Shown: positions 4,741 to 30,014 of the stretch, piece by piece
Position numbering within the stretch: position 1 is the first letter of the stretch
How the letters are laid out: each line of letters begins with the position of its first letter
From: Wallemia ichthyophaga EXF-994
Taxonomy: Eukaryota; Fungi; Basidiomycota
Direction: 5' to 3'
Assembly: GCF_000400465.1 (NCBI RefSeq)
Contig: NW_008806275.1
Span: 207,443 to 239,442 of the forward strand
Length of the DNA stretch: 32,000 bases
Notes under the pieces: generated by a model
Told to the model about the DNA's origin: nothing
Seen by the model: only the letters and a program-made list of their open reading frames with translations
Database searches by the model: none
Program-made: the position numbers and the translations under genes

Positions 4741-5353
4741 GTGATATGGCGAGAGGATGGGGATAATTCGGCTATAAAAGATTAATGTAGTTTTAATGAC
4801 TGCTGGATTTTATCAGTGAATGACCGTCTCTGACTTGTCACTGCTCTGCGACAATCAACTGTAATGTTGTAAAGGGAGATAAGAAAGGATTTTGATAATG
4901 AGCACTGACCTTCAATATATCAAGAAGCATCAATACTGGGTTTTGCGCTTTTCTCCTCCTTATCGTTCCGTACCCCCACTTCTCTTTAATAGATATTCAT
5001 CATCTCAAGATGGTTTAATCAAACGAAAGAGAGTCAGGGCTCATGGGCTTTCGTCGTCAACCAAAGCGATCTCATTTCAGCAGCAAAGGTCAAGTACATA
5101 AATGCAGCTTAAGGAAATGGGAACAAAGTGGATGATACTAACCACGTACTCGATATCCCAGAGAACTGCAAGTAATATAAAAGTTCCAGGACACGATTTT
5201 GTCGTTGCGAAGCTCGATATATGCCTGTCTGGAAGGCAAATCGATTACATCACGCAAAATATTCGCACAGATGTTTCACATACTAGAAGAGGTTAAAAAA
5301 TACATGGCAACTAAGTGCAAAGTATGAGCGCGTTAAAAATCTACACTTGAATA

Positions 5354-7738: not shown

Positions 7739-8384
7739 TAAAATTTAAAAAAAGCCGCGATTTCACAGTACAAAGGACAATGATCCCTGACAAAGAAGTG
7801 CAACGTGTAGGTAACAAGGAGCATTCGGCTGAGGATGTAGCTATTACAGGTAATTTGTTCAAGATAAGATTAAGTAGAGGAAATGTTTGGGAATGTTTCC
7901 ATTTAAGGTTCTTTTAGGCAGCTTAGGAAGACTGTCTCAGATGACTCAAGTGTCAAACTGGACTTAGAAGCGCGCATAGCAACTCTAGACAAGAACGACT
8001 TATTTTAGCTGTTCAAGGAATGCAGACTGTCTGACGTGATCCTTCTGCGCCTGCTACTTCATCGTATGGATCTTTTCTTTGAATATCACAGGTCGATCTG
8101 GCGTTGCAGCCGAGTGGGTGCTAAACAAGGGTAAATCTTGAAATATGATTCCTACTATTAGACATTGCGGTTTTGCAGAAGAAATATTGCTAGATTTCCA
8201 AATGTGAGAGCAGCTTGTACTATGTTCACTTACGATACATCTGAACGCCTAAAGTAGTCCCCTGCTTTGTCCCTAGAGGATATATACCTGCCATAAAAGG
8301 GTTTGCAATATGCCAGGCTACAACAACAACTGTAAATGTCAACAAATTTGAAATCGCTTGCGCCCCTTGAACCGAAACCGCCAA

Positions 8385-11490: not shown

Positions 11491-12659
11491 TTACGCCTGA
11501 CCGATGGTTGCAAGCGCTTGACCCTTGAATTTTTCAAACAAATCCTTAGCTTCCGTCCACACGCGTGCGGTGTTGCGGTTGGTTAACTCGAAGAGAGATG
11601 GGAGGAGGTCATGTGAGAATGCATCCGAAGACTCTCTTGGGAGGAGAGTAGGGAGGTGGTCGATTGAGACAACCTGCATTGGAGGAACGTCTGCATTTAA
11701 CTCGACTGGTACTGTTGGCTTATCGAAGGTAGTATTAACGTTGTAGATTGGAATTGGGTTGTTTGGATTAGTAGTGTCACAGCTGACGTCTACAACTACC
11801 GACAATCTACGGTCCTTGCCTGCACTCTCGATGAATTGGCGATCGATAAAGTTTGGTATTTTAGAGCTGAGGTAGATGCAGTTGACGAAGATATCAACAT
11901 CGAGGATCTCCTGGAATGGGCCACCTTTTGCGGTCTCATTGATATCCCACTTGATAATGTTCTCATCTGCGAGACCGGCTTTTTGGAAGAGTGACACAGC
12001 ACCTCTACCGCATCTGCCGAGTGCACCGATGACAAGAGCCTTGATAGGCTTGTTGGAGCTGCTTGCGGCGATCTTTTTCTTGAGATCGTCGATAAGCTCA
12101 TCCTCATTAGGGTATGGCTCTAAATGACCAAGTTCTTTGTCTTCTTGCTGGGCAATATGTGAGAGCAAACCGACAGCTGCACCTGCAAAACCTGCGTGGA
12201 AGCCAAATGCAGCGACCCTGCGACCGCTGTTATCAGTGAGGAACTCCAAATCATACAGACTTCCGCCTCCGTCTGCGAATCTCTTCAATACATCAGCCCA
12301 GCCAGCTTGTTGCTTGTAGCAGTGTGCGAATTGGATGTGGGTGTGCTCGAGCGGCTTGTCCTCGACTGGGAGCTCTTTCAATCCAATGATTAACGTATCT
12401 TTTGGCGCTGTTGGCCATGAGTTGTGTGGTGCGAGCTTTGCACCGACTCTGTAGCGTGTGAGTTACTTGTGCGTAAATTATCTTAAAAATAAACTCACTT
12501 CTCATACTCCTCGTCGTCGAAAATGCGCTGTGGGTCTCTCTCAATTGTCACATCGAATCCTTTATCGAGAAGCTGCTTCGTCGTTGCTGGCGTGAGCGCT
12601 GCTCTTTTTTCGAATTCCTTGGTCTCGCATCTGAGCCAGAGCTTTGGTGGTGTACTCAT
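11491..12659 (-). CDS. LYS1: Saccharopine dehydrogenase (NAD+, L-lysine-forming), 372 aa
   Basis: Exon 12659-12499 (LWLRCETKEFEKRAALTP), 50-nt intron, exon 12448-11491 with GLKELP, FAHCYKQQAGW, GRRVAAFGFHAGFAG, GALGRCG, VDVSCDTTNP and SIDHLPTLLPRESS. Confidence 0.97.
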
Positions 12660-13114
12660 TTTGATTTGCTTAGTGGTTTGAAAAGAAGAAGTCGGCTAGG
12701 TCGCTATCGGCGGTGTGAGTCATTGTGGTATGAGCTTGCGTGGCTGTGATATAGCTATAAATTCCTGTGAATATATTAAAACTAACACTGCTGAGGTGCA
12801 TTTCTGTTGCAATTATATAAAATCCCCCTGATTGAACAAGCTGTGTGTAAAATATAGCTTATAATAATTCCATGATAGCCTTAGACAGATTAATTTTTAA
12901 GCGGACTTTTAAGAGCCGTTTTGGAACCCTCTGTCCGTTTTGAGATAGTATCACTGGTTGACAAGGATAAGCTGGCACCCTAATAGGCTGATATAGATTT
13001 TAGGCGTAACTTAAACGTTGTGGTATATCCTGAAGTTCTTTAAAATCAAAAAGAGTCGCGTTTAAGGCCTCTTGAGGGTTTGATATATATTGATGTAAAA
13101 ATGAATGTTTATAA

Positions 13115-13185
13115 GCATTAATGGGGTAGTGGTAACCTCGATCGTTGCCATCGATCGGCCCCCGGTTCAATTCCGGGTTAATGCA
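13115..13185 (+). tRNA. tRNA-Gly (anticodon GCC), intronless, 71 nt
   Basis: Full cloverleaf: acceptor GCATTAA/TTAATGC plus discriminator A, D stem GGGT/ACCT with loop AGTGGTA, anticodon stem GATCG/CGATC with loop TTGCCAT, T stem CCCGG/CCGGG with loop TTCAATT. T-rich tract (TTTACTTTT) immediately downstream. Confidence 0.96.
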
Positions 13186-13636
13186 TTTACTTTTGCATCT
13201 CAAACCTTCTATCTGCAATTCGATACCTTTTTCTTTTGTCTTCCATATTTTATTTGCGAATTTTTTATACAAATTGACAATTACCTTTTAAGCATCAGAA
13301 ACCGAATGGAACTTTCAGAGCGATTTTCAATCCACAATTGACAACTGCCAGACGAAACGTAGAGGTCGGAGGAAGCCAGATTTTGCTAGGCAACTGTAAG
13401 TAGATTACTCTGTCATTCTCAACCACCCCTGTTATTCCCGAAGCGAGCCAAAAATTTAGTTAAGTTGACTCAGATGATGATTCAGATATGACGTGATGTC
13501 ATCCGACACATTCATTCAAGTACCTAGTGATGAAAAGGTTCCTAAGATCCAGACCTTTTGTTCACTAGATAAAAGCCGCTCGATTTCTTCATGTCTTTGT
13601 CCGCATACACTGAACAGGTTTCTCACTCTCTTTAAA

Positions 13637-14093
13637 ATGTTTTACAAGTCAATCGTCGTCGCCGCTATCGCCTCAATGGTCGCTGCCGCACCTACCCAAA
13701 CTGGTGCCCCTGCAGCTAAGCGCTCAGCAGACTCCTACGGTAACCAAGCCACTTGGTACAATGCTGAGACCGGAAACCGTGGTGCTTGCGGCCAGTACTT
13801 ATCAAACGACGATCGTTTTGTCGCTGTCGGATTTGGCTCACCAATCCCATGTGGACAGTGGATGGTGGGTGAAAAGACTAACTATTCGACCCCACTAACA
13901 ACAAATGCAGGGCTTCAACGTCAACGGCGTCACTAGCTACGGTTACGTTGCCGACAAGTGTGCTTCATGCGCCAACAACCACTACGACATGTCCGAAGCC
14001 CTCTTCAACGACTTTGGTGCATTCGGCCAAGGTGTCATCAACGACATCTGGGCATGGCAAGTCGATAGCTGGGTTGAGCCAAGCACCCTCTAG
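13637..14093 (+). CDS. Secreted RlpA-like double-psi beta-barrel protein, copy 3, 136 aa
   Basis: Exons 13637-13864 and 13911-14093, with a 46-nt intron at the same position as in copies 1/2 (after CGQWx). Signal peptide, KR site, ATWYNAETGNRGACG, VADKCASC, HYDMSEALF, IWAWQVDSWVEPSTL. Confidence 0.9.
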
Positions 14094-15331
14094 ATTGCAC
14101 TTGGCACATTGTGCTTTGTGCACTTTGATTTCTCTGGTTAGATCGAAGTTATAGACATAGACAAAACTGCAAAACTGTAAAAATTCTACTGTGCTTCTCT
14201 ATGCACTACTGTACACTCTTTGTTAATACACTCATTGCAAATTTTTTTTTGTTTCAGTCTATACCAACGTATAAATGCTCAATATCTGCCTGTCAACACA
14301 TAAATGCTTAACATCCGCAGCCGTGTTTGACAATGCTCAGTCGTGTGTTTAGTATTATGTATGATATTCACGCAACTAGATAGGGTCTCATACGCGCCAA
14401 ATCTCGGTTTAGGTCGTGTTATACCTTCCAGAGTGTCCGATAGTGCAGAGCCACGAGTAAGCTGTAGATCCAGTACAATCAAAATCTGCACCTCTATTGA
14501 TCCATTCACATAAAATAATATATAGTATTCCATCAAATCATGCACTAATTCTCAAATCAATTCAAATATGTTATCGTTGTGGTATATAGAAAAGTATCTG
14601 ACAACATGCCAACGGCCCATTTCCCATCTACCAATTGTCCAGCTGCTTAGAACGAGAGCTTTAAGCACTGATGAGAGAGTCTTCTTGCGTGGAAAACCCG
14701 ACAAGCTAGCGTGAGACATAACCTCTAGCGTGGGGCATAAAATTTAAGGTTTCAACATGTAAACCATAGTCGGGATCGTAAAAGCTGTGCTGTTAACGCT
14801 ATAGAATGATATCTTCATACCTATCTTATCTGAATTTGTTCACCTTGGAGTTCCCGACGCTAAAAGTTCGAAACCAAAGTTCCGACACCAAGCTGACACT
14901 TAGGAACAAACGATATCACAGGTTAATAGAGTAATTAAACACAGCTTTCTCGAATTTTACCACAGACTGCATCTTAAACATTCGCAAATTTGTTTTCAAG
15001 TTGGAGTGTCTCACCATAAAATCTTGTAGAGGTCAAATACCGCATAATCAGCTTCAAAATCAGCTTTAGAGAATGTCTCCCGTTTCCCTGAAGCTAGGCG
15101 CCAAGCTTTTGGTGTTAGCGACGATTCGAAATTTGGCAAAAACTGGACTCACACTATCTGCTTCCAGAGAATGCCAAACTGTTACACATGTGGGATAAAC
15201 TGAAATTAATTCACACGATTAGTTCCGAAAAGCTGTACAATTCGCTAGAAATCGTCATCTAACACACGATTAAGTTACAAGTCTCACCTCAAGAGTTCCT
15301 GGAGGACGAAAATCTCGAACGTCTTGTGGGA

Positions 15332-15338
15332 TATAAAA
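15332..15338 (+). promoter_or_regulatory. Probable TATA box of RlpA-like copy 4
   Basis: TATAAAA ~60 nt upstream of ATG 15393, followed by a CT/CA-rich leader. Confidence 0.5.
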
Positions 15339-15392
15339 GTTGAGAATCATTTGTAGCTCTTCTTTATCTACAACACGCACACTCTCTTTACA

Positions 15393-15870
15393 ATGTTCTA
15401 CAAGTCAATCGTCGTCGCCGCTATCGCCTCAATGGTCGCTGCCGCACCTACCCAAACTGGTGCCCCTGCAGCTAAGCGCTCAGCAGACTCCTACGGTAAC
15501 CAAGCCACTTGGTACAATGCTGAGACCGGAAACCGTGGTGCTTGCGGCCAGTACTTATCAAACGACGATCGTTTTGTCGCTGTCGGATTTGGCTCACCAA
15601 TCCCATGTGGACAGTGGATGGTGGGTGAAAAGACTAACTATTCGACCCCACTAACAACAAATGCAGGGCTTCAACGTCAATGGCGTCACTAGCTACGGTT
15701 ACGTTGCCGACAAATGTGAGTTGCAGAATGCTTGTGCCAAAATTTTCTAACAAGATAAAGGCGCTGCATGTGCAAACAACCACTACGACATGTCCGAAGC
15801 ACTCTTCACAGATCTTGGTTCAATGCCTCAAGGTGTATTGAACGACGTTTGGGCCTGGCAATTGGACTAA
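15393..15870 (+). CDS. Secreted RlpA-like double-psi beta-barrel protein, copy 4, 128 aa, two introns
   Basis: Exons 15393-15620, 15667-15715 and 15761-15870. The second intron GTGAGT...CTAAC...AAG (45 nt) splits the Cys of DKC. Spliced tail KCAACANNHYDMSEALFTDLGSMPQGVLNDVWAWQLD*. Confidence 0.87.
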
Positions 15871-16121
15871 GCGAGACGCAAACGGATTGGCTCTCTGGAA
15901 GGACCAATGAAATAGAGCAATACTAAGTTCATATTATAATGTGCAGCGCACATCCACACTCATTGTAACAATAACACTCATTCATGTATTTGCATCTCTT
16001 ATCAATTTCCGTGACTGGAGTAGATAATCCGTGTAGTGTACACGATATCCTGCCTCCTCAATAGCTGCCGTTGCCGCTGCCGCCTCTCTAACTTAAACCA
16101 CCAAGAACTGGCACTGCGCAG

Positions 16122-17614
16122 ATGAGGGTAGGCACAGAGCTAATATCTCGAATATGGACTCAGAAATTATCAGGAAAGCAATATAATAGTTATAGAAACA
16201 GGCAGGACGATGCTCGCAGGCAAGCCGCTCGGAGAAATATTCCACAAGCCTCAGCTGCAATTCGAAGCAAAAGTCGGCGTCAAGAAGACGACGCTGGATG
16301 GAATAGCCAAGGGCGATTTAGATGACAGCATGGACACGGATGAGAAGCAGCCGATGCGTCTCAGGCCATCGAGTTATCTCGTAGGACAGCAACTTGAAGA
16401 TACCTTACTGGCGGGAGAGCCTATTGAGATAAGTTATCCGTGGCGTGATGGTCGTATACACGACTGGATTGGTGCAGAGGCCCTTTGGAAACACGCCCTT
16501 AAGCAGCTTCTTGGGAACCCACGTGCTGCAACTGCTTTGGTGTTGGTCACTGTCCCACACGGACTGTCAAAGGATGAAAGCGAGAAGATTACTCAAATCT
16601 TCTTTGAAAGATTTAACGTTCCTGTGTTTGCACTGTTAGAACGCCCCGTCCTTGGTCTCTATGCTTCAGGCAGTGTCAATGGTCTTTTCATCGATATAGG
16701 CTACGACTCTACTGATGTTGTACCAGTACTGGAAACTATGCCTCAGTATACGGCTGCTACGCACTGGAGGTTTGGCACACGGGAGCTGTCAGTCTATCTC
16801 GCAAGTCTGCTGAAGAGCGACAGCCATCTGCTCGCACATGAAAAGCTTAGCGCGTTGGGGGAGCAAGAGAAATTTAACGCTTTGGTCGAGATTGCTCAAG
16901 AGCTGTTCAACCATCCTCACTCGCTCTCGCTTCTACCCGAGGAAGACGAGAAAGAGAAGAAGAAAGGAGAGGAGTTGGATATCGCAGCCGCACTCGTTAG
17001 TGGTCAAGAGCAGAATTTAATTGATGAAAAGGACGCAAAGGAAAATAACCCAGCAGCCTCTCAAGGGAGATTTGAGGTGCAGTGGCGCGGAAGCACTGTA
17101 TCTGTTGGGAAGATAAGACAAAGATTTTGGGAGCCATTGTTTAACATGAACCTCCTGAAAGGCTTGAAAGGAGTTGATGAGGAGCAGACACGAGTTAGTC
17201 TACCTGAGGCTATCGTGTATACATTAGATCAGTGCGAGATTGAAACGAGGCAGCAAATCTTGAATGGACTGGTGTTGGCAGGACCTCTGGCTGGCTCCAA
17301 GGGCTTCTCGCAATTGCTAGCACCACATATCGAACCATACCTCAGCAAAGGTGACAATAACGAGTTGCAGGCATCAGCATCAGCTATCAAGGTGCTCAAA
17401 GTACCAGATTACTTTGCAGACTTCAAAAAAAGAGATGATTTAAACACTTTCCTGGGCGCTAGTATTGTAGCAAAAGTAAGAGTCGCCAGAGTATAGCAAT
17501 AGCGCTAACGATTTCCAGATAACATCAGCAGATCACTCGAGCTTCGCCATCACCAAAGCAGACTACAATTTGAGAGGACCAGCGGTGATCACGGTGACCC
17601 CATACCTTGTGTAA
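16122..17614 (+). CDS. Actin-related protein (nuclear, Arp9-like), ~467 aa
   Basis: Exons 16122-16127, 16174-17475 and 17519-17614 give MRESNIIVIETGRT.... Actin-fold motifs: YPWRDGRIHDW, ITQIFFERFNVP, GLFIDIG, LVLAG, FLGASIVAK, ITKADYNLRGP. The subfamily assignment is tentative. Confidence 0.82.
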
Positions 17615-17645
17615 TTAACTAATTTATGTGTTTTAATAGTACAAT

Positions 17646-18148
17646 CTACAATTCCTCATGTGTTACTTTTCCAGGACCCGTCGCACCGTCAAGAAGCTCA
17701 ATATCGAAAACAAGAGTAGAACCAGCAGGGATAGGACCAATAGATCTGTTCCCGTATCCCTGTGCAGGCGGTATTGTTACTTTGCGTCTCTCGCCTTGAC
17801 ACATGCCTAGAACGCCCTTTGAGAGCGTTAGGAGGGGAAAAAAAAGGGAGAAAAGAAGGGTAACAAGAAACGCACCTGCTCCCAGCCAGAAATGACCTGA
17901 TTCGCACCCAATTTGAAGGTAAAAGGATGCCTACCAGGCTTTCTACTCGAATCAAAAACGGTACCTTGTTCGAATAACGATCCAACGTAATGCATTTTCA
18001 GGTTATCACCATTTTGCGCTGTATGTAAACAAGGATCAGCTTTTTCTTTGATTCCAATTTGAAGTGTTGTAGGTGGTTGTTTGGATGTAGCAGCAGCAGC
18101 GCCAGCAGCACCTAAAAGGAGACCAATAAATGATATAAAGTTAACCAT
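17646..18148 (-). CDS. FPR2: ER-luminal FKBP-type peptidyl-prolyl isomerase (FKBP2/FKBP13), 147 aa
   Basis: Exons 18148-17876 and 17816-17646. Signal peptide, [53 protein letters not shown] and a C-terminal HEEL retention signal. Confidence 0.93.
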
Positions 18149-18218
18149 AATATTTAATAGGATTTTAATTTTAATTTTATATTACGTCGATGATGGTTGT
18201 TATCAACGTTCATCACAA

Positions 18219-20808
18219 ATGAAGACATCGCCTCAAACGATAAACGATGTGCCGCACAAGCCTGTGACTGATTACACCCGATGGAGGTTGATAGTTACTG
18301 ACGTCGGCAGGCACCAGTGGAAGTATCTCTCCCCTGAGCAATCGGCTGCTTCTCCGCAGAGTATTGAAGATAAATACTGGTTGGGATTGGATATTGTGGG
18401 TTTTATATCCCAGTATCACAATTACACTCACCTAATCATCCTTAGAATCTACCTCAACTCCCTGAGCCACGAAACCCCCTCGACGCTGCTCGTAATGGTC
18501 TGTTGAAGCCTTTGCTCTTCCGTTTCGCTCATTCACTCCACCAGGCTTCAAATTCTACAAGCAAATTCAATCCGTAGATGGCCACTGGGCTGGTGAATAT
18601 GGAGGTCCCATGTTCTTGCTTCCTGGTCTCGTTATTTCAAATTACATATCAGGTGTGAAACTCGCCGAGGAACAGAGAGTGGAAATTATTCGCTATCTCT
18701 TTAACAGAGCTCATGAAGTTGATGGCGGCTGGGGAATGTGAGCAGTCTACATTTCATCATGCCTGTCTAACGATGTCCAAGACATATTGAAAGTCCATCC
18801 ACTGTATTCGGTACAGCGCTAAACTATACAGCGCTTAGGCTTCTTGGTGTTGAAGCAGATCACCCTGTCATGACTAAAGCTAGGGGGACTCTGCACAAGC
18901 TTGGTACGTAGAATGGCTTATAGAAAGACGAATACAGCTAATGCACACAGGCGGTGCAACTGGATCTCCAGCGTGGGGGAAGTTTTGGCTTGCTTGCTTA
19001 GGTGTATACGATTGGGATGGTGTCAATCCAGTACCACCTGAGCTCTGGTAGGTCTAATAATATTGTTTGGACTTTTTTCACTCTGTGTCTAGGTTGCTAC
19101 CAGATTGGCTGCCAATACATCCTACCAAATGGTGGATACACTGCAGACAGGTGAGTTGGTAATATTCAAAGATTTTGCCTCCTAATTGAATACAGATTTA
19201 CCTCCCAATGTCATACCTCTATGGGAAGAGATTCATAGGCCGATCGACTGAGCTTACAGAGCAGCTGAAACAAGAGCTGTATGTGGATCCGTACGCTAGT
19301 ATTGATTGGTCTGCACAGCGGAACAACGTCAACAAAATCGATCTCTTCCAACCACATTCAGCTGTAATGGACGCCCTTAATGCTGCTCTCTACTACGGAT
19401 ATGAACCCTGCTCTATACCACCGCTTAGACAAGCAGCTCTAAGGAAAGCTTACACGCATATCGTTCACGAAGATGAGAACACATGTTATCAGGGATTAGC
19501 GCCTATCAATAAGGCTTTCAACCAGCTCTGCCGTCTGGATGCTGATGGGCCTGATTCTAACGCCGTCAAGAAGCATTTGGAAAAGACAAATGACTTTTTG
19601 TGGCTTGGTCCTGATGGCTTGCGTGAGACTGGTACAAACGGATCTCAGCTGGTAGGTGGGAGGGTGTAAGAGGTAGGTATTTTATTGCTCACCAACACAT
19701 AAGTGGGATGCTGCATTCATTGCTCAAGCACTCGTTGAGACGGGACTTGGCGAAGAAGAAGAAAACAAGCAAGCCACTGAGAAGCTCCTTGAATGGATTG
19801 ACAAATGCCAAATAAGACAAGATCCGCTCTATCCAGCTTACCGTCAACCAACTAAAGGTGCATGGCCATTTAGTACAGCTGAACAAGGATATACGGTCAG
19901 TGACTGCACAGCTGAAGGCATAAAGTCTGTCATATACCTTCAGGAGTATTTGAAGTGAGTATGAAGTGCGCGCAAAGCTATTTTTAAACTCCTACCAGGC
20001 ACACAAAACACCACGTCTCGTATGAACGTTTACATGATTCAGTCGATCTGCTACTAGGGATGCAGAACGCAGATGGTGGTTTCGCATCGTATGAGCTGAC
20101 GAGAGGCTCGAAACATCTCGAACTCCTCAACCCTGCTGAAGTTTTCGGTAAGATTATGGTCGAATACTCGTACCCAGAATGTACAACATCTGTCGTTACG
20201 GCACTGTCACTGTTCAAGAAGCACCAGCCAGATTATCGTAGAGAGGATATAGAAAGGACAACAAATGCAGCTATCAAGTATATTCATGCCGCACAAAGAG
20301 AAGATGGAAGTTGGTATGGGAGTTGGGCCATTTGTTTCACGTATGCGGCTATGTTTGCTTTAGAGTCGCTTTCTTCGGTAGGAGAGCACTACGAGAACAG
20401 TGAAAAAGTAAGAAAAGCATGCGAGTTTCTTCTCAGCAAACAGAAAGAAGATGGTGGATGGGGAGAATCTTATTTGAGTTGCGAGACAGAGGAATACACT
20501 CAGCACCAAGACAGTCAGGTAGTGCAGACTTCGTGGGTCGTTCTTGCGTTGTTGCATGCCAGATACCCACATAAAGAGCCAATCAAACGCGCTGTACGAT
20601 TGATAATGAGTCGACAAAACAAAGACGGTAGTTGGACGCAGGAAGCGATTGAGGTGAGTGGTTTAATGATATTCAAACCGTCTAATGCAGATGCTACTAG
20701 GGTATATTCAACAAGAATTGCGCTATTTCATATCCAAATTACAAGTTCTCCTTCACAATCTGGGCATTGGGGAAGGCGTATCGAGAAGTGGGTGATATTG
20801 AATGGTAA
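18219..20808 (+). CDS. ERG7: Lanosterol synthase (oxidosqualene cyclase), ~9 introns
   Basis: [64 protein letters not shown] (Val as in lanosterol rather than cycloartenol synthases), [10 protein letters not shown] repeats (QREDGSW, QKEDGGW, QNKDGSW) and terminal [14 protein letters not shown]. Confidence 0.96.
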
Positions 20809-20820
20809 TGACGTGATACA

Positions 20821-21147
20821 TTAAGATTTGCCTTCTCGCCTTGCTTTGAGCTGGGAGAGTGTGAGTGTGGTGGTGGGAGTGTTATCAATGTTTGCTTACC
20901 CAGAGTGCCTTACAATCTTGGGCTAATGTGAGCTGTGCGGGGCTATAAAAATGAGACTCACTCCTGTAATTCTCGAAAACCTCTTTGCAGTTCTCTTTCT
21001 GATAGTAGTTGTCTTCTAAACACTCGAAGCTCTTCTTTGCAGCGTCGGCGCAGGGGCTGTATTGAGATTAATTCGGCAGAATGATTGCAACTAACACCCT
21101 CACTCATTAAATTTTGTAACCTTATCTTTAGCCTCGGCGCCGCTCAT
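20821..21147 (-). CDS. COX23: Twin CX9C mitochondrial IMS protein, COX23/CHCHD7-like, 61 aa, 4 exons (missed by ORF track)
   Basis: Exons 21147-21104, 21056-20962, 20916-20900 and 20850-20821 with GT-AG introns of 47/45/49 nt. Spliced product [61 protein letters not shown], containing two exact CX9C motifs and the DPC...Y..C...W pattern. Confidence 0.87.
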
Positions 21148-21168
21148 TGTTCTTGTTGAAGAACCGTT

Positions 21169-21829
21169 ATGGCGTCACAACCACCAATTCCTCCGCCAGC
21201 TCCCAAGCCGTTGCCACTTGGGTATGAGTCACCAAAAGACAAGGCATATCGCAAATTGGTTGAACAGCCATTGGTTCCTATTGGTGGGAATGTATCGAGT
21301 TGAGTGACAGACAAACGCTGACGTAGGCATAGGAATCGGTGCGACGATTATAGCGCTCACACGCGCAGCCATGGAGATTAGAAGGGGTAACAGCAGAGCA
21401 GCGAACAAGTTCTTCAGATACAGAGTCTATGCGCAGGGAGCCACCGTTGTCGCAGCCGTTGGCGGTATGTGGTACTATGGTACAGCGCAGGAGCAAAAGG
21501 GCGCTAGAATAGAGAGGGATCGATTGGCCCGAACGGCTGAATTTGAGAAGAGACTTGATGACCTCAATCAGGCTGGCGTAGGCGAACAAGCGATGACTAG
21601 CTTCCGGAAACACGCTTCTGAAGCTGATAAACGCAAGGTTAGCACTATTGCTGATCTTGATCTCACCGGCACTTCCTGGGACAAGTTGCCGGCTGAAACT
21701 GCCCCTGCGTCCGAGAAAACACCCGAGAAGACACAGCAAGTCAACACAAGCAACCCACCTATGCCAACATCAGGGAGATTCTCACAGAAAGATCCATTGG
21801 CTTCGAATAGAGGAGGTAAAAGCGAGTAA
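21169..21829 (+). CDS. RCF1: Respiratory supercomplex factor 1 (HIG1 domain), 203 aa
   Basis: Exons 21169-21283 and 21333-21829. EQPLVPIGIGATIIALTRAAMEIRRG...FRYRVYAQGATVVA is an N-terminal HIG1 domain with a QRRQ-like motif, followed by a coiled-coil and a low-complexity tail. Confidence 0.88.
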
Positions 21830-21861
21830 AATGGATTTATCTTGTAATCTACATAACAATC

Positions 21862-23384
21862 ATGAGCTTATTTCCTTTCTCAGCGTTGCGGTGTGGCAGA
21901 GGAGGAGTTCTGGCTGTAGCATCCAACAATCAAATAGCTGTAATTGATGGGTTCGTGTGGCCTCGTTTACAATACTCCCACTCAGCCTTCTCAGCATCAA
22001 AGTCCTCAAGAGCACAGAAGGACACACGATGCCTATCAGAGTGCTCCTATTCAGCAGCGACGATAAGCAGCTGATAAGTACTGGCGACGATAAGCAGCTT
22101 AACGTTTGGAATATCGAGAAAGATGCACTCGTTCTCAAAGACACAGTGTGTGTGGGGCATCTGGCTTTATGACATCTGCTTACCACTCCTCAGCCTCATC
22201 AGCAAGCGTGCAAACTCACTCAATCTCCTCAACGAAGACACTGTCCTCGTTGGAGACAAATTCGGCGATATTTTCACCTACAAGCTCAATAGAACGGACC
22301 AAGACAAGGAGAATGACGCAAAAACTAAAAACAAGGACAAGGAACCACTGCTTGGACATGTCTCAATGGTTAATGATGTCGCCGTCACTCCCTCACACAT
22401 CATTTCTGCAGACAGAGATGCTCACATACGCATATCAAGGAACCCACTGGGATATGTCATTGATATGTTCTGTCTCGGCCACGAAAAGTTTATCACTGCA
22501 GTCGGTGTACTCGATGAAAATCTTCTTTTGTCTGGTGGTGGTGACGATTATATTATTCTGTGGAATTACAAAGAGGGCAAGGAAATGAGGCGATTTGACG
22601 TGAGAGATGCTGTTCTTGCTCATGCTTCAGTGAGAGCAATCAAAATTCAAGATAAGATGCTGAAGAGCGATGATATTCCGGCTGATTACGGTGAGCATAT
22701 TCTGTGCATTGATCGCATATTGGTTAGTGGAATTGGAAAGGATGCGGGTGGTGATGCTGTTGACCCACTCGTGCTCTTCACTTCATGCGGGTGAGTTGAA
22801 AGCGCTGTGCAAGCAGCTCCATTAACGTTATATCGCAGTGCGACAGGTGTTTTCTACGCGAGAAAATCAGCATTTGTAGAGGCCAACGAGTTCAATATCC
22901 AGGCTGTTGATTTGCAGCATCCTATCATCGAAATGGCAGACATGGGCGGAGGCAAGTTTGTTGTGACGCTCGATACATCCAGAGGAGCGCCAGATGCAGC
23001 TGCTGTACTCATGCTGAATTCTGAAGGAGAGGTGGGAGATTATGGCTCTATTGAGGTATTATCTGATAGATATACAGCTACAAATAAGTGAACAAAATTC
23101 GCTTGTGAGTACGTTGAATGGATTGACTGTGCAAGGTAAGACTGCTCTAACCTCTTACATATAATTCCGTCTAATATCATCCTCCAGGCGCAGAAAAGGA
23201 TGTCAAGCACCTCGACCTCTACTCTCAACTAGCCCTGCAGCCCAAAGTCGAAGGCGAAGACAATTTAGACGAGGAGAAAGAACATCCAGAGAAGAGTGGA
23301 AGGACTGGTGAAAAGCGCAGGGCGAGGGAGGCAGCCAAGATGTCAAATCAAGCTAAAAAAAGCAAGACAGATGAGTCGACGTAA
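21862..23384 (+). CDS. TRM82: tRNA m7G46 methyltransferase non-catalytic WD40 subunit (several introns)
   Basis: LISTGDDKQL, SKRANSL, VLVGDKFGDIF, LLGHVSMV, IISADRDAHIRISRNP, FCLGHEKFI and LLSGGGD are WDR4/Trm82 hallmarks. Basic C-terminal tail ending at TAA 23382-23384. Confidence 0.9.
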
Positions 23385-23440
23385 GGTAATAATCATCAAT
23401 TATGAATAGAAATACATTATTTGTCTATATGTCCACACTT

Positions 23441-24073
23441 TTAATCGCAAGATTCATCCAACCAGCCGTCTCTCCACCGTTGCGGCACCTTATCGCAATC
23501 GAAAATATCCTTACCGAGACGGGCATTGACGTCGTTGTGCATCTGGCACCTGTACGTGTATGTGTAAGACTATTGCGCGACCTGAACACGTAAGGCAACT
23601 TACATCCACAATTCAAGCGCAGAGCGTGTATGAACCTGTGGCGGCTGTTGTTTGACGTAACTGCGTAGATGGCTAGCGCAATCACCGCATGGGTAGAAAG
23701 AGCCAACTGAGCTAATTAGATTCTTCATCTGAGTTTGCTCACTTATACTGGCTGTGTGGGGGTAGTATGATGCCGCTGTATGTAGGAATGTCCATGTCTG
23801 CCGACCGAGTTGGTCTGCGTCGACTGGACACCCGAATTTGTCTGCTAGTGTTGGTTGGGCTAGTTTTTGGATATTGCTTTGGGTTTGCGTGTTGTTGGTG
23901 GTGTTGTTGGTGTTGTTGGTGTTGTTGGTGTTGTTGGTGTTGTTGGTGTTGGTGATGTTGCTCCCACTCCCACTACTCCCACTACTCCCACTTCCCCCTT
24001 TTCTCTGCTGCTTGGACCAACTTTTAAACGAATTGCACACCTTGCATGGCTTCCCATCCGCACCAATTTCCAT
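23441..24073 (-). CDS. ERV1: Mitochondrial FAD-linked sulfhydryl oxidase Erv1/ALR, 192 aa
   Basis: Exons 24073-23604 and 23549-23441 (54-nt intron). N-terminal DGKPCKVC shuttle, CP.D..QLGR.TWTFLH, YPCGDCA redox centre, [25 protein letters not shown]. Confidence 0.96.
23899..23992. repeat. Two adjacent 9-bp coding minisatellites in ERV1 (TNN x ~6 and GSS x ~3)
   Basis: (GGTGTTGTT)n at ~23899-23952 and (CTCCCACTA)n at ~23961-23992. Confidence 0.9.
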
Positions 24074-24134
24074 ATTACTAACACAGATCACAGTTGGTAT
24101 CAAAGTATAAATAATTATTTAATTTTATCATCTT

Positions 24135-26471
24135 TTAAAATGGCGTCTCACACACTACACACTTTCCAGCGCTGCTTGGCGATTTGCACATGCATATACT
24201 GCAGCTCCTCTCATTCCCGCCTTGCTTAGCCGCTGCCCAGAGGGGGTTGAGTGTGGCTGGTGTGGCTGATACTGTTGACGGCTGCTCGTCTACCCTTATG
24301 GCAAAGGAGATGGATGGTACTGCTTCCACCTTCTCCTTCAGCCCGGGTGCTATCTTGCTCACTGGGATATTAAGCAGCGAGTTGAAAGTAAATGAAGGTA
24401 TCTCCGATACTGCTTTAGATTGTGCTTTGTCCTTGGCGTCTTGTGGAGGTGGTGTAGTTGCGGTTGTGGCTGTGGTTGATGATTCTGGTGTTGGTGTCGA
24501 AGCTGGGAAAATGTTGACAAATGTGGAGCTCTTGTTGTCTTTCGCTTCACCTTCAACCTTGTTCACTTGCGCTTCCTTAGCTGCAGTTGAGAATGAGGGG
24601 AAAGATGGGAATTGCGATGGTTGAGGTTGTGCTTTACCCTTCTTCACTTGATCCTCTTCAAGTTCCTTATCATCGTCCGATGCCTTGGCTGGCTCTTCAT
24701 CTTTTGCTTCTTCCACTTCATCCATCTCCTCTTCGTCTTGTTCCAGTTCGTCGTGTTCCATTTCGTCACTCTCTTCTTCCTTCTCCTGTTCGACATCCTC
24801 TTCTTTCTCACCATCTACATCTACATCACTGTCACTGTCGATGTCTATGGTTTCAGTGGTTTTTGCAGGTGGCTTAGGCGAGGGTGGAGTTGGTTGCACA
24901 GACGAGGCGAAAGTAGGCTTCGGCTGAGAGGAATGTGATTGAGCGAGTGAGCTATTTTGTGGCTGTGTCTGTCCGAAAGCGCGATCGGTTGACTGCATCT
25001 CTAAAGCCTGCTTCTTCGGTGATGGTTCGGCTTTAGCTGCGAGTGGACCGAATGCTCCCGTTTCAGGCTGCGAACGACCTTCAGCTTTATCAAAGGAGGG
25101 TTTGCTCAGGTCGTTAGATGTCGCTGAACCTTTCTGCAACTCGTTCTCGTCAGCTTTTCTCTTGTTTTTCTATTAACGTCAGCTGGAGTGATCAAGGATG
25201 CTAATTTCACCTACGGATGGATCTGTCTGTTCGATCAGATCGAGTGCGCTTACGTTTGCACCTTTGTTTTCTTCTGATTTCTCTCCATCAGTCTTCTTCT
25301 CGGGAGCAACACTCTTCCTAGAATTAGAATCACGCAGCTTAGATGGTCGAGGTGTACGAGACTTAGAAATACGAGCGACAGGGTTGTTATTTTGGTATGG
25401 GTTGATGGTCTCATTTGATGGTTTGTTAGAAACAGGTTCATCACCCAAAACACCCAAAACAGCATCAGCAGCTCTACTACTGAGCTTTGAAGGTGTGTTG
25501 TGATCCTCTCTCTGCTTGCTTTTCTCAGGTGAGGGTGATTGAGATGATTGAGATTCAGCCGTTTGTACTTGACGGAGTGGAGAGGGTCGAACGACGGTAG
25601 CGGGTTTAGAAAACCGTGGAACACTCAAATGGGACGATTTTGAAGGAGTGGAAGTGAGTTTTGGTTGTGATTGCTGGTGTTTTTTGTTTTCTACCTGCTG
25701 CTGCTGCTGTTGTTGTTTTGAGTCTGCGTTTGAATCATCAGTTCTGCGCCTCTTGCCCGTGTCGATGGGGAGTGATGAACCAACGCCGATGGATCTGCCT
25801 ACATTTTCCAACGAGCTTGAGCTGTTTCTTCTATTTGATTGGGATGGGCTGCCGAAACCAGCGCCCATGTAGATAGGTCTCTTCCTTGCAGATAAAGAAC
25901 CACCGAGGCTTTGTCTGGAGTTTCTCGAACTTACGCTGCTTCTCTGGGAGAGGTTAGAACGGGCAGGGGATAAGAAAGCGTTAACAGAGCTAGTTTGTGG
26001 TTTGCGTGTGGGGGTAGTGGAAGTGCCTGGAGAGAATAGGGCGACGGAGGGGATGTTCTGTGATTGGTCGAGTGGAGGTTGTTGGATTGAGCTGCCGATC
26101 AATTTGAAACATTGAACGGCTTCCTCAGAGGTGAGTGAGCGGTTCCCCTTGTCTTTAAAAAAGTTGGATAGCAGGTTGTTGGTTTGCTGTGAATCATCTG
26201 GCTGTCTCCAGTCGATGAGATCTTCAGTGGGATGAGCGCCTAGTTCCTCGATATCCATTGGTGAGTCAATGTGGGCATCTTTAAGGCCATCTCCGTGATT
26301 GTCTCCGGAGCCGTGAGCATCGCCGGAGCCATCACCATCACCATCACCATCACCAGTGCCATCTCTATAACTCGATTTGAAGGGAGATGAAATTAAATTA
26401 TAAAAAGAGCTAAAACCAGTCGATCTCCTTTTTTTATTTTGAGTTTTTGAGTAAGGACTCGAGTGGTTCAT
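24135..26471 (-). CDS. Nuclear basket nucleoporin (Nup60/Nup1/Nup153-like) with a C-terminal RanBP2-type zinc finger, ~763 aa
   Basis: Exons 26471-25215 and 25169-24135 (45-nt intron) join two ORFs in frame. N-terminal basic patch plus amphipathic helix (KKRRSTGFSSFYNLISSPF), Nup60-like LSNFFKDKGNRSLTSEE, long S/T/P-rich disorder with FSF/FTF-like motifs, and terminal CSICMCKSPSSAGKCVVCETP. Confidence 0.68.
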
Positions 26472-26493
26472 GGTTGTAAGTGAACAACCAACA

Positions 26494-26985
26494 ATGCCTT
26501 CTCCAGAATCGCCAGGCCAATTTCCACTCATCGACGTTGATCCTCACTTCAGCAGAGTCGTTAGATTTTTCAGGCCATCTGACTACGTTGCCTGGGGTGC
26601 TCTGTCCACGGCCACCCCTGGTTTGTACTACGCTTGGGAACAAATCAACCCAACAAACGCCATCAAGCAAGTCAAAGTTAAATTGGCTGTGCCTACCACT
26701 CTCGGCGTGATCGGCGGCTTCTTACTCGCCTATCAAAGATCGTCCTTCAGATTCTTTGGTTGGACTGAGAATGGTCAAGAGCAGGAGAAAGATATGGCTG
26801 AGCTATCATCCAGAGCCAACCAAGGCAAACCCCTCTACGGTGACACTGGCCTCTCCCCATACCTCCAAGGCGTCGCTCACAGGAACTCTGCCTTCTCTCA
26901 ACTCAAATTGGCAACTATCCCGTGGTTTAACTTTGCTAACCATAGCCATCACGGTGTCGACGCTGACAAGTACTCAAATAACTAA
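26494..26985 (+). CDS. NADH:ubiquinone oxidoreductase 21-kDa accessory subunit (NUXM / NUO-20.9 family), 163 aa
   Basis: Intronless. PLIDVDPHFSRVVRFFRPSDY, YQRSSFRFFGWTEN..E, GKPLYG..LSPYLQGVAHRNS, PWFNFANH.HHGVD..KY. Confidence 0.92.
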   Translation: MPSPESPGQFPLIDVDPHFSRVVRFFRPSDYVAWGALSTATPGLYYAWEQINPTNAIKQVKVKLAVPTTLGVIGGFLLAYQRSSFRFFGWTENGQEQEKDMAELSSRANQGKPLYGDTGLSPYLQGVAHRNSAFSQLKLATIPWFNFANHSHHGVDADKYSNN

Positions 26986-27040
26986 TTTGTACAAATTTTC
27001 ATCCATTTCCCCCTTCTTCTCGTACCTCCATGAGCTGCAC

Positions 27041-29495
27041 ATGTCCGCCGTCGATACCAGCATCTCCCACGCGCACACCGCCGTATCCACCCACTTCCGC
27101 TCTCTCTCTCTATCGCTATCTCTCTGGTTCGTTCTCATCTCCACCGCCATCTCCGCAGGTATCATCTCTGCTTGTCTAGATATCATCATCGACTGGCTTT
27201 CTGATCTCAGGCAAGGCCACTGCACGTCTCTCTTCCTGCGCTCACTCAAGAGCTGCTGTCCGATGCACCACATGTGCGACGATTGGATCGAGCACACGAC
27301 GGCGACGAATAACATCATCGCCTTTCTTGTCTACGTCTTCTCTGCCATACTCTTGGCACTCGCATCAGCTACTCTCGTCGCTAAACTCGCTCCACGCGCT
27401 TTCCACACGGGCATCCCCGAAATCAAAGCTATTCTTGGCGGTATTGCTATACGAGATTTCTTATCAATGCGCACGCTCGTCGTGAAAGCTGTTGCGCTGT
27501 CCCTCAGTGTAGCCTCTGGGCTGTCTCTTGGCAAAGAAGGGCCACTGATACACGTCACCTGCGCTCTTGCCGAGTTGTACATGGGGGTGGTACGCAGGAT
27601 CGGTGTAGGTGTAGGTGACTGGACAAATTCCGGCGCGCGTCAGCGTCAGACATACGCAGCTGCTGCAGCTGCTGGTGTGAGTGTAGCATTCGGTGCACCA
27701 TTAGGAGGTGTGTGTCAACTTAACAGCCATCACCCTGCCCCCTCACCCTCAACTGCACAGGCGTCATGTTCGCATTGGAAGAACTTGACATAAATCTCTT
27801 CCCTACCAATACTCTCTGGCAGGCGTTTGTTTGTGCTGCACTCGCCGCAGTAACGCTGCAGTGGTGCAACCCATTCGGGACGGGGAAGCTAGTCCTCTTC
27901 TCCGTTTCTACTAACCAGTCTTGGAAGCAGTTTGAATTGGTCTTCTGGCTCCTCCTGGGCGCACTCGGCGGGTTGGCGGGTGTTGCGCTTTTACGGCTTA
28001 ACCTATTCTTCGCTAGGTTGCGCCGCGATACCACTCTCAGACGCTACCCTATCCTCGAAACGACCGCCGTCGCTCTCCTTACTGCTCTGCTGAGTTATGC
28101 GAGTATCCTGACGAGGTGTGTGGGTTTATTTTAGAGTGCTGTGTTGCTATAGTGCTATTTTGCTCTATTGCTATGCTATGCTCTTCAACACTCATACTCA
28201 CACTCACTGACACGCTCACAGAGTGCAGAACACTTCACTAGTCGCAGCGCTCTTGCAGGAGTGTTCCAATACCAACACCACATCAGCACCAACGCTACAG
28301 CTACATGCCACAGTGCTGCTTTGCAACAGTGACCGGCGTGTAAGCGTGACAGTTATGCTACTGGCCTACGCTGCCGTGGTGAAGCTGCTCCTTACAGCCT
28401 ACACATTCGGTCTCTCTGTACCTGCCGGTATATTTCTCCCGGGTCTCTCCATCGGTGCGTGTATGGGACGCGCTCTCGGTGGATTACTCGAATTGGTCGA
28501 AGAGCGCTACTCGACGCTAGCTATTTTCGCCGATTGTCATGGTGCGAGTGATGGTGGCGGGTGTATCCGCCCCGGTCTCTACGCTACTGTCGGCGCTGCT
28601 GCAACTCTCGCTGGTATTACGCGTATGACTGGTGAGTGAGGTTTTATTTTGTGGTGTTTTCTTCCTTTTACTTACTTTAATCTTTATCTCATCTCTCATC
28701 TCACCTTCTACAGTCTCGCTCGTCGTCATCATCTTCGAACTTACTGGCGCACTCTCGCACGTCGTCCCGATCATGATCGCGGTGATGACGGCCAAGTGGG
28801 TAGCAGATGCCTTTGGGAAGCAGGGTGTGTTCACGGCATGGATTTCTCACCAGCAGTACACATATATCCCGCAGGTGGATATTGATGTTGGGTTGGGGGT
28901 ACGGGGCGCGAGTGTCCGTGATATGCACGGCGTGTGTGCGCGCGACGTCGCTCTGTCCCATTATCCCACTCTGCCCGCTGATGGGGAGATTAGGGAATTG
29001 ATGGAGCTGACGCGTGGTAATGATGATGATGATGCTCACACTCACACTCATGGCTACGCTATCATTACCCGCAACGATAGTCTGCTTGTTGGTTGGGTTC
29101 AGGCAGAGAAGATTGTTGCTATTGGTGGTGTAGTGGAGTCTAATTCAACCATCCACTCTTCTTTCTCCTTCAACCAAACAGAAACCCCAGACACACTCGA
29201 TCTTAGCACATATGTCGATACAGCCCCGCTTTTCTTCTACGCGTCGACGCCAATTAACGTGATTGTAGCGACGTTCCAGAGTATGGGGGTGGATAGAGTG
29301 TTTGTTGTGAGCCAGCCAGGCACGCTAGTTGGAGTGATTGAGCGTGTACAGATATCGCAGCTGATGGCAGGCAGAGCGGGTGGATTGGGGCTGGGCTGGC
29401 CGGCATGTCTCACCAGAAGCAAAGGGAGAAAGGAATATGAGCAAGTGGAGATGGTTGAGCAGGCAGGGGAATACCAATTAGAAGAAGGAGGATGA
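27041..29495 (+). CDS. CLC family chloride channel / anion-H+ exchanger (3 introns)
   Basis: WLSDLRQGHC, TGIPEIKAILGG, LGKEGP, GVSVAFGAPLGG|VMFALEE (intron 27708-27760), NPFGTGKLVLF, PAGIFLP, GAAATLAGITRMT|VSLVVIIFELTG, and a degenerate CBS tail. The start codon is a best guess. Confidence 0.93.
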
Positions 29496-29571
29496 AGGAA
29501 CGTGAAAAAGATGGAAAAAGACAACAAAATGTTTTGTTTTATTTAAGATGACGATATCCGATCAAGATAGA

Positions 29572-29973
29572 TCAAGTAGACAGCTCTTGTACTTTCTCAG
29601 CATTGTTCATATCCTGCTCTCGTTGCTGCTTGTGCATATAAATTCTAGCAAGTTGAGTGAGACCAGTACAACCGACGCCAAAGTTAACAGCCGCGAGAGA
29701 GTAGTTTATGGGTTTGATGACAAGCGAGTACCTGACCCATATGAAACCAGTAGCAGCGAGTGCTAAATTCTGATTTAAACTCAGTTTATCTGCAGGTTTA
29801 TTGAAGTCTTTGAGTCCGGCAGCTACTAGAGCCCATTTCATCAACGGTGCCCAGAAGAAAACAGTTTTTGGGCCTAAATTAGATAAATAAGGGGATTGCT
29901 ATTGAAATATAATATCCCCACCCGCTGCCGAGTTCATAAATCTACCAAATCCAGATCCAGACGCAGAAGCCAT
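29572..29973 (-). CDS. MPC2: Mitochondrial pyruvate carrier subunit (MPC2-like), 117 aa
   Basis: Exons 29973-29922 and 29873-29572 (48-nt intron). AGPKTVFFWAPLMKWALV, LSLNQN.ALAATGFIWVRYSLVIKP.NYSLAAVNF, GLTQLARI. Confidence 0.93.
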
Positions 29974-30014
29974 TGTGATTGTTGATAAAGAACAGCCAAA
30001 AAAACCAAATTTAA

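Follow-up and report, generated by a model that had tools for sequence, protein, structure and literature searches.

Genes that face one another across very short intervals have been described in several settings. In compact microsporidia transcripts initiate within upstream genes and have very short 5' untranslated regions (UTRs) (PMC3629993), and as far as the account of Williams et al. 2005 given in PMC3629993 goes, the spacers of microsporidia and nucleomorphs are too short for promoters and UTRs as an effect of compaction across the whole genome, with no gene-specific device involved. HSPD1 and HSPE1 (HSP60/HSP10) are linked mitochondrial genes that diverge from a shared bidirectional promoter over a very short interval (PMC2871058), while CHCHD7 and PLAG1 form a divergent pair about 420 bp apart in sheep and are also linked in cattle (PMC7552293). 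More generally, 5'-5' antisense pairs and bidirectional promoters join genes on opposite strands whose start sites lie within 1 kb (PMC2648788, PMC2670823). Here we compare with these systems COX23 and RCF1 of the halophilic basidiomycete Wallemia ichthyophaga EXF-994, two genes of cytochrome c oxidase (complex IV) biogenesis that a first-pass annotation had placed head to head, with only 21 nucleotides (nt) between their start codons, in the window analysed here, a stretch of 32,000 nt (KE007225.1:207443-239442, assembly GCA_000400465.1). Contig and window agree at every position over the 20.6 kb compared.

We find that the pair is real, and probably a locally ordinary product of an unusually compact genome. 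Similar to the microsporidian and nucleomorph cases its spacer is too short for a promoter; Wallemia differs from them in being free-living, with an ordinary intron density (2.4 per gene) and 9.6 Mb of DNA, and the transcript overlap put forward here is a prediction. Similar to HSPD1/HSPE1, two linked mitochondrial genes diverge across a very short interval. However, HSPD1/HSPE1 is kept in both fungi and metazoa and encodes the parts of a single machine, whereas adjacency of COX23 and RCF1 is seen only in Wallemia, their products belong to different assembly modules and neighbouring pairs that appear unrelated are equally tight. CHCHD7-PLAG1 likewise has a COX23 orthologue in a divergent pair, but there the partner is an unrelated zinc-finger gene and the interval fits a normal promoter; because CHCHD7 pairs with PLAG1 in sheep, the identity of the COX23 partner is not conserved. 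With the 5'-5' antisense pairs COX23/RCF1 shares opposite strands, facing 5' ends and a probable overlap of 5' UTRs, and measured between ATGs it falls among head-to-head pairs (less than 1 kb), but its start codons themselves are 21 nt apart and no promoter is possible between them. None of the general elements is new, neither the head-to-head pair nor overlapping transcription in compact genomes nor the compactness of Wallemia genomes; the additions are a missed COX23 gene and a concrete picture of extreme local packing in a free-living fungus.

The COX23 and RCF1 genes

An intact COX23/CHCHD7 orthologue is wedged between ERG7 and RCF1, without public annotation. It occupies 20821-21147 on the minus strand (327 nt, four exons, 61 residues, ATG 21147-21145), and all three of its introns are of the GT..AG type. 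Exon 1 (21104-21147) encodes 14 residues plus 2 nt, and its ATG and exon/intron boundary are shared by W. mellicola and by a third lineage of the genus, nearer W. ichthyophaga, that is represented by the Logan assembly of SRR25399871 (the Logan lineage). Intron 1 (21057-21103, 47 nt, GTGAGG..CAG) lies 66-112 nt upstream of the RCF1 ATG and is 53-57% identical between lineages. Exon 2 (20962-21056) holds the first CX9C motif and the beginning of the second, and is followed by intron 2 (20917-20961, 45 nt, GTGAGT..AAG), by exon 3 (20900-20916, ..NCKALW), which agrees with the annotated W. mellicola protein P0004, by intron 3 (20851-20899, 49 nt, GTAAGC..CAG) and by exon 4 (20821-20850), which encodes LKARREGKS and a TAA stop at 20823-20821. 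Within intron 2 an in-frame TAG acceptor sits 6 nt upstream of the AAG, and its use would add two residues and turn the second CX9C into CX11C; the orthologues in the two other lineages each offer one acceptor only, CAG or TAG, which immediately precedes ATTG(T/C).

The spliced product has methionine at position 1 only, as the first-pass annotation had stated, and contains two CX9C motifs (C17-x9-C27 and C38-x9-C48), which places it among the twin-CX9C/CHCH proteins, small and lacking a presequence. No Pfam family matches it above the gathering score (Pfam holds no COX23-specific model), and the CMC4, COX6B, NDUFB7 and CHCH models align weakly, CHCH-type models covering residues 13-56. Among PDB sequences, the set compared here, it matches human CHCHD7 best (2LQT, E = 2.7e-6), a protein orthologous to yeast Cox23, with CMC4 following at E = 0.007 and others above 0.02, and the alignment covers the characteristic CL(D/E)(D/E)N.Y ... 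Y(K/R)NC(K/R)..W pattern. The identity proposed from the sequence alone therefore holds, on the twin CX9C motifs and the CHCHD7 match. So does the start at 21147, which is in the same place in three Wallemia lineages and leaves an N-terminus of the length found in the homologue (16 residues before the first Cys, 14 in CHCHD7), with no space for a further exon. P0004, an annotated orthologue of 62 residues, is 82% identical and matches our model in structure, while the Logan-lineage protein, from a hand-built model, has 64 residues. Moreover, over codons 16-61 between 42 and 44 of 47 residues are kept across lineages, with synonymous changes among the conserved codons. Cox23 is known from yeast as a factor in cytochrome c oxidase assembly (PMC7582755), and the same role is predicted in Wallemia.

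That this model is a chance open reading frame or a pseudogene, or that the spacer length is an assembly error, seems to us scarcely credible. The assembly GCA_000400465.1 has no gene annotated at this position, and no identical protein occurs in a collection of 5.8 billion proteins, so that no cDNA-derived copy is found there either. However, the published pipeline was incapable of finding such a gene: gene prediction relied on GeneMark-ES alone, and RNA sequencing could contribute a novel transcript only at a distance of at least 200 bp from a gene (PMC3849046), while COX23 sits 12 and 21 nt from its neighbours, which is why it went unannotated. A non-functional gene is further opposed by the intact twin CX9C, by canonical introns at positions kept in three lineages, by the retention of residues through synonymous change, by the annotation of P0004 and by the CHCHD7 match. 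An indel in the spacer, which the first-pass annotation had raised as a possibility, is excluded, since the same arrangement recurs in W. mellicola and in the Logan lineage, and the spacer length is reproduced between independent assemblies.

RCF1 runs in the opposite direction, on the plus strand. Its exon 1 (21169-21283; ATG 21169-21171) encodes 38 codons plus 1 nt and is separated by a 49-nt phase 1 intron (21284-21332) from exon 2 (21333-21829), which encodes the remainder of the HIG1 domain and a C-terminal tail and ends in a TAA stop at 21827-21829. The intron is ancient, since a distant fungus has it at the identical position and phase. The model is 100% identical over 203 residues to the NCBI hypothetical protein J056_002077, and it matches HIG_1_N (PF04588) at 73.7 bits, against a gathering cut-off of 22.4, over residues 32-83. 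Its closest matches are yeast Rcf1 (5NF8, E = 4e-11) and human HIGD2A (7e-10), with HIGD1A/1B at about 2e-4 and Rcf2 at 0.33, and we agree with its earlier identification in calling it an Rcf1/HIGD2A-like HIG1 protein. Type 2 HIG1 proteins carry the motif (Q/I)x3(R/H)xRx3Q; here it reads N-KFF-R-Y-R-VYA-Q, with N in place of Q/I, and the distant fungal homologue carries the same variant. A 23-nt block of exon 2 within this motif (21404-21426, AACAAGTTCTTCAGATACAGAGT, encoding NKFFRYRV) is synonymously invariant in three lineages, while the adjoining codons vary.

The start of RCF1 at 21169 is equally well placed. The next methionine, M52, falls inside the HIG1 domain, and an in-frame TGA lies upstream at 21157-21159, both as first read. 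In two other lineages 37 of the 38 exon 1 residues are kept despite many synonymous changes (codons for the same amino acid are identical in only 56% and 36% of cases), while upstream of the ATG similarity between lineages collapses at once. The stretch before the HIG1 domain has the length found in yeast Rcf1, shorter than in human HIGD2A. This pattern of substitution shows that the protein is clearly under purifying selection from its first residue, Met1.

Packing of the run and its transcripts

The spacer between the two start codons is 21 nt long (21148-21168, TGTTCTTGTTGAAGAACCGTT), as had been claimed, and this is the local norm, one case of extreme local compaction. The W. ichthyophaga genome has been described as 'unusually compact', with 4884 genes in 9.6 Mb, 73.6% coding sequence, 2.41 introns per gene of mean length 61 bp and 45.35% G+C (PMC3849046), a base composition that the window shares (45.4%). 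With COX23 added and one chimeric model split, 12 genes occupy the 15.6 kb from 16210 to 31829, and the 11 gaps between them measure 12-76 nt, with a median of 41 nt and a total of 477 nt (3.05% of the run). In a survey of 64 species the mean divergent intergenic distance for fungi is 1343 nt (PMC2871058). Eleven consecutive spacers are thus too short for promoters and UTRs, as is typical of compacted genomes, and the median is comparable to that of microsporidia and nucleomorphs, yet this is a free-living fungus with normal introns.

Along the run, the actin and FKBP genes converge across 31 nt, and FKBP (-) and ERG7 (+) diverge across 70 AT-rich nt (18149-18218). ERG7 (lanosterol synthase, stop codon 20806-20808) and COX23 converge across 12 nt (20809-20820), so that their 3' ends must overlap. 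Beyond RCF1 a WD40 gene (+, ATG 21862) follows in tandem after 32 nt (21830-21861) and converges with ERV1 across 56 nt; ERV1 and a nucleoporin-like gene are in tandem at 61 nt. The nucleoporin-like gene (-) diverges from that of a 21-kDa complex I subunit (+) across 22 nt (26472-26493), which is in tandem with CLC at 55 nt; CLC converges with MPC (the mitochondrial pyruvate carrier gene) across 76 nt, and MPC (-) diverges from an SPX transporter gene (+, SPX/Na-sulphate symporter) across 41 nt (29974-30014). By our own judgement the divergent pairs at 22, 41 and 70 nt are functionally unrelated, and the comparator starts are backed by W. mellicola N-termini (MPSPES../MPTLEQ.., MNHSSPY../MDNKKHSSPY.., MASA.., MKF..). 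With gaps this short along the whole run, promoters, 5' UTRs and 3' UTRs must overlap adjoining genes throughout. The RCF1-WD40 gap measures about 34-36 nt in the other lineages (hand count), and all three lineages share the leader ATAACAATC-ATG without a difference; since an ATG that is out of frame but in strong context stands at -31, just past the RCF1 stop, the WD40 leader is probably shorter than 31 nt.

An RNA polymerase II pre-initiation complex spans several tens of bp and, with its nucleosome-free region, far more than 21 bp. Since 21 nt cannot hold a promoter, each core promoter should lie in the partner's transcribed DNA, and the earlier proposal of promoters inside the partner gene, with overlapping 5' UTRs or very short leaders, is geometrically sound. 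In such an arrangement the RCF1 core promoter would lie on exon 1 and intron 1 of COX23 and the COX23 core promoter on exon 1 of RCF1; the start sites would be crossed and the 5' UTRs, of a few tens of nt, would be mutually antisense. Adjoining transcripts would then run into the 327-nt COX23 gene at both of its ends. Whether the leaders overlap or are very short, a polymerase elongating along one gene has to pass through the promoter of the other, and the two genes may as plausibly interfere with as co-activate one another. If promoters are indeed crossed and overlapping, Wallemia would be useful for studying promoter function within coding DNA and transcriptional interference.

An indication of leader length comes from upstream ATGs, which we counted on the sense strand before 15 start codons in each of two species, 30 in all (window 12659-30015 and W. 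mellicola locus L007). Two were observed at -1 to -18 where 7.1 were expected, five at -19 to -40 (11.9 expected) and 11 at -41 to -80 (21.5 expected), against 33 at -81 to -150 (34.2 expected). Upstream ATGs are thus depleted about two-fold from -1 to -80 (18 against 40.5) and not depleted further out. When only stretches inside adjoining genes are considered, six were observed and 11.3 expected (P about 0.07). Depletion to about -80 points to leaders of tens of nt, which at the pairs spaced by 21-22 nt would mean overlapping antisense 5' UTRs, and for COX23/RCF1 we lean towards such an overlap.

Alternatively, the two genes might be nearly leaderless, with both start sites inside the spacer, leaders of at most 21 nt and an overlap of nil or a few nt, the promoters still being in the partner; this is possible and in our estimate somewhat unlikely. 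One observation weighs against overlapping leaders. In the Logan lineage out-of-frame upstream ATGs stand at -23 for RCF1 and at -19 and -28 for COX23, and a leader reaching further would have those at -23 and -19 (the latter with A at -3) as its first AUGs, which favours very short leaders there. WD40 (-31) and ERG7 (-26/-29) have out-of-frame upstream ATGs too. Very short leaders can be translated in other eukaryotes, as in mammalian TISU genes, a precedent that we count for this alternative. The compact microsporidian E. cuniculi offers another, its 5' UTRs being among the shortest known (PMC3629993). Against short leaders stand the depletion of upstream ATGs to about -80 over the 30 Wallemia starts, the persistence of this trend inside adjoining genes, and at least 85 ATG-free nt upstream of both genes in the two other species: going upstream, the first ATG lies at -88 for RCF1 and -100 for COX23 in W. 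ichthyophaga and at -85 and -173, respectively, in W. mellicola.

Coupling or compaction

The first-pass annotation had gone further and seen in the pair a minimal bidirectional unit hard-wiring co-expression of two functionally linked genes. We find this claim unsupported, as pairs that we judge unrelated diverge in the same run across 22, 41 and 70 nt and tandem and convergent gaps measure 12-76 nt, and without it the COX23-RCF1 pair is itself of modest interest. The functional link stands in the broad sense that both proteins act in complex IV biogenesis, and fails in the narrower one, since they belong to different modules and are not direct partners: Cox23 acts in the copper/Cox1-Cox2 branch and Rcf1 in the Cox3/supercomplex branch (PMC7582755). 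Taking about 50 complex-IV-related genes among 4884, we estimate that chance alone would give about 0.5 adjacent and about 0.1 divergent complex-IV pairs per genome. In the reading that we prefer, local compaction, the shared link to complex IV would most likely be a coincidence, and any co-regulation a by-product of one common nucleosome-free region, as for any pair so close. A search for the RCF1 sequence in the published W. ichthyophaga tables readable as text, the complete salinity differential-expression table among them, found no entry, the tables using other gene identifiers, and we found no literature on Wallemia bidirectional promoters.

Conservation of the pair was to be a further check, and here the result is divided. 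The pair, all its intron positions and a spacer of 21, 21 or 24 nt are common to three Wallemia lineages, and the arrangement is ancestral to at least these three. In W. mellicola, where the COX23 protein is indexed in 25 blocks, we read the spacer at five loci of genome assemblies and on three short Logan/ENA contigs, and each time it measures 24 nt, AATAGTCCTTGT(C/A)AGAGAACTACA; the Logan lineage has 21 nt, GGTTCTTCAACAAAAACATCT. However, the whole neighbourhood is syntenic across the Wallemia species compared, and because all local gene order is conserved there, retention of this pair is uninformative. Searches with protein homologues returned only Wallemia proteins and one distant fungal RCF1, hence a single outgroup locus. 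On that 3.3-kb contig (57% G+C) COX23 was not found near RCF1, which is preceded by a CT-rich region of about 230 nt and then a hydrolase gene. Persistence of the pair where flanking synteny is lost, the mark of an HSP60/HSP10-type pair, was thus not seen among Wallemia and the one outgroup contig. In yeast, COX23 (YHR116W) and RCF1 (YML030W) are on different chromosomes, and human CHCHD7 (8q12), HIGD1A (3p22) and HIGD2A (5q35) are unlinked. A metagenome scan with the conserved 5' coding pattern of RCF1 gave 13 matches, all of them chance proline-rich sequences, with no RCF1 and no COX23.

Nor does the DNA around the starts show a conserved element. From lineage to lineage, identity in the introns and spacer is 38-69% and no block stands out as conserved, and RCF1 exon 1 has no extra synonymous constraint (0.56/0.36, against 0.55/0.43 and 0.49/0.43 in the rest of the gene). 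Three CCAAT boxes (ATTGG on the plus strand) lie on the COX23 strand at 21255-21284, at the 3' end of RCF1 exon 1 and about 105-140 nt upstream of the COX23 ATG; we rejected them as a conserved Hap-complex site, as they are absent from the W. mellicola orthologue.

The spacer does contain the dyad that had been noted, a perfect GTTCTT (21149-21154) and AAGAAC (21159-21164) around a 4-nt centre GTTG. Such a dyad is uncommon: of the 21-mers in the window 0.7% hold a perfect 6-bp inverted repeat, and half-wise shuffling of the spacer yields one in 1.5% of cases. Among the three lineages W. ichthyophaga alone has it in perfect form, the arms matching at 5/6 positions in the Logan lineage and 4/6 in W. 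mellicola. Its arms coincide with the A/C-rich stretch directly before each ATG (..AAGAACA-ATG and ..AAGAACCGTT-ATG), as do those of the 22-nt spacer between the nucleoporin-like and complex I genes (..ACAACC-ATG and ..ACAACCAACA-ATG), and such contexts resemble the leaders of other window genes. Back-to-back leader contexts give a G/T-rich half followed by an A/C-rich half, a layout in which inverted repeats arise more readily, as the half-wise shuffle indicates. The dyad would thus most likely be two mirrored A/C-rich leader or Kozak-type contexts, left over in a spacer shrunk to about 20 nt. We also considered and rejected an RNA hairpin (stem-only centroids of -5.2 and -5.8 kcal/mol, and 39-nt folds with z of about 0, no better than shuffles) and a recurring leader motif AAGAAC (the window has 16 copies where about 21 are expected, not significant); besides the two defining copies only one more AAGAAC lies in a divergent spacer. 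As a separate observation, the nucleoporin-like/complex I spacer (26472-26493, GGTTGTAAGTGAACAACCAACA) holds its own perfect and different dyad, GGTTGT-N6-ACAACC. In the COX23/RCF1 spacer, moreover, the centre GTTG (21155-21158) is replaced by its reverse complement CAAC in the Logan lineage (L006, about 1797-1800) with the arms conserved, and flipping it in place raises the W. ichthyophaga/Logan identity from 12/21 to 16/21 (hand count), which looks like a hairpin-loop inversion or a template-switch mutation.

Could the pair nonetheless be a dedicated bidirectional unit, in which selection holds COX23 and RCF1 together across a minimal spacer, with one shared regulatory region and the dyad as a binding site? 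We think this quite unlikely. In its favour the pair and its 21/21/24-nt spacer are kept in three lineages while other tight pairs vary in length, the dyad arms are partly conserved (the 16-nt core is 12/16 identical to W. mellicola, by hand count), short divergent pairs conserved in fungi tend toward related function (PMC2871058), and a stretch of 9 kb also takes in ERV1, MPC and a complex I subunit gene. Opposed to it are the equally short spacers joining genes that we judge unrelated in the same window, the uninformative nature of conservation where all local order is kept, the distant fungal RCF1 locus without COX23, the different chromosomes in yeast and human, and PLAG1 as the partner of CHCHD7 in sheep. 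It is further opposed by the imperfect dyad in orthologues and the different dyad in the other tight pair, by the absence of extra conservation in RCF1 exon 1 or the introns, by the differing assembly modules of the two proteins, and by the frequency at which adjacent complex-IV pairs should arise by chance. Wider still is the idea that Wallemia routinely runs RNA polymerase II genes 20-40 nt apart at their starts, with promoters in partner exons and antisense 5' UTRs, and that the ERG7-COX23-RCF1-WD40 block, above all the COX23-RCF1 spacer, is selected as a co-regulated mitochondrial unit. As a whole this strikes us as improbable; if routine spacing of this kind and a selected unit were both true, Wallemia would be a tractable model of promoters without promoter DNA of their own.

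Several observations nevertheless pull against local compaction as the full account. The COX23-RCF1 spacer is steady at 21-24 nt in three lineages, so that a special constraint is conceivable, while W. mellicola is looser at the nucleoporin-like/complex I pair (22 vs 50 nt) and at MPC/SPX (41 vs 99 nt). A perfect 6-bp dyad is an event of about 1%, yet one is present in both of the 21-22-nt spacers of the window. Synonymous-codon identity in COX23 (codons 16-61) is somewhat above that of RCF1 (0.70/0.59 vs about 0.5/0.43), which would fit an RCF1 promoter embedded there and which we take as a marginal hint. Finally, five of the 12 genes in the run code for mitochondrial proteins (COX23, RCF1, ERV1, the complex I 21-kDa subunit and the mitochondrial pyruvate carrier), within 9.2 kb (20821-29973); the rough post hoc P is about 0.03 if about 16% of genes are mitochondrial, and the order is kept in W. 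mellicola.

Gene models and other features of the window

Across Wallemia, gene models appear to break where genes are tightly packed. The NCBI model of 948 residues at 23441-26471 (-) is a chimera of the nucleoporin-like gene and ERV1, which are two separate genes in W. mellicola. The nucleoporin-like gene has its stop codon from 24135 and a C-terminal zinc-finger-like CxxC..CxxC, and the 3' part of the model is ERV1, a sulfhydryl oxidase (Evr1_Alr, 68.5 bits) with its ATG at 24073. ERV1 acts with Mia40 in the import of CX9C proteins such as COX23. The MAKER annotations of W. mellicola join ERG7, RCF1 and WD40 in single proteins of 1152-1205 residues with COX23 nested on the opposite strand (L002-L005, 2850-7585), and JGI models truncate RCF1 to 84 and COX23 to 51 residues (L007, 9636-10200). 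Small CX9C genes and tightly packed genes are probably mis-annotated genus-wide, which affects inventories of respiratory-chain assembly factors. At the 22-nt pair, the start of the nucleoporin-like gene forms a CATG, which gives the gene of the 21-kDa complex I subunit an alternative ATG in frame at 26470; for the nucleoporin-like gene itself, an ATG in frame lies upstream at 26531.

Elsewhere in the window, a scan of its entire length with Rfam gave no match at gathering score, and was silent also at 13115-13185, where ARAGORN places a tRNA-Gly(GCC) in the only long divergent interval of the region. A direct segmental duplication of 2.4 kb (389-2802 and 5340-7753, 99.2% identity, starts 4951 nt apart) holds in each copy an identical open reading frame of 112 residues on the minus strand (695-1033 and 5646-5984), which has an internal Met followed by a signal-peptide-like stretch and matches no Pfam family. 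Two small paralogous genes at 13637-14093 (136 residues) and 15393-15870 (128 residues) both begin MFYKSIVVAAIA and have similar leaders before their ATGs, ctctctttaaa and ctctctttaca.

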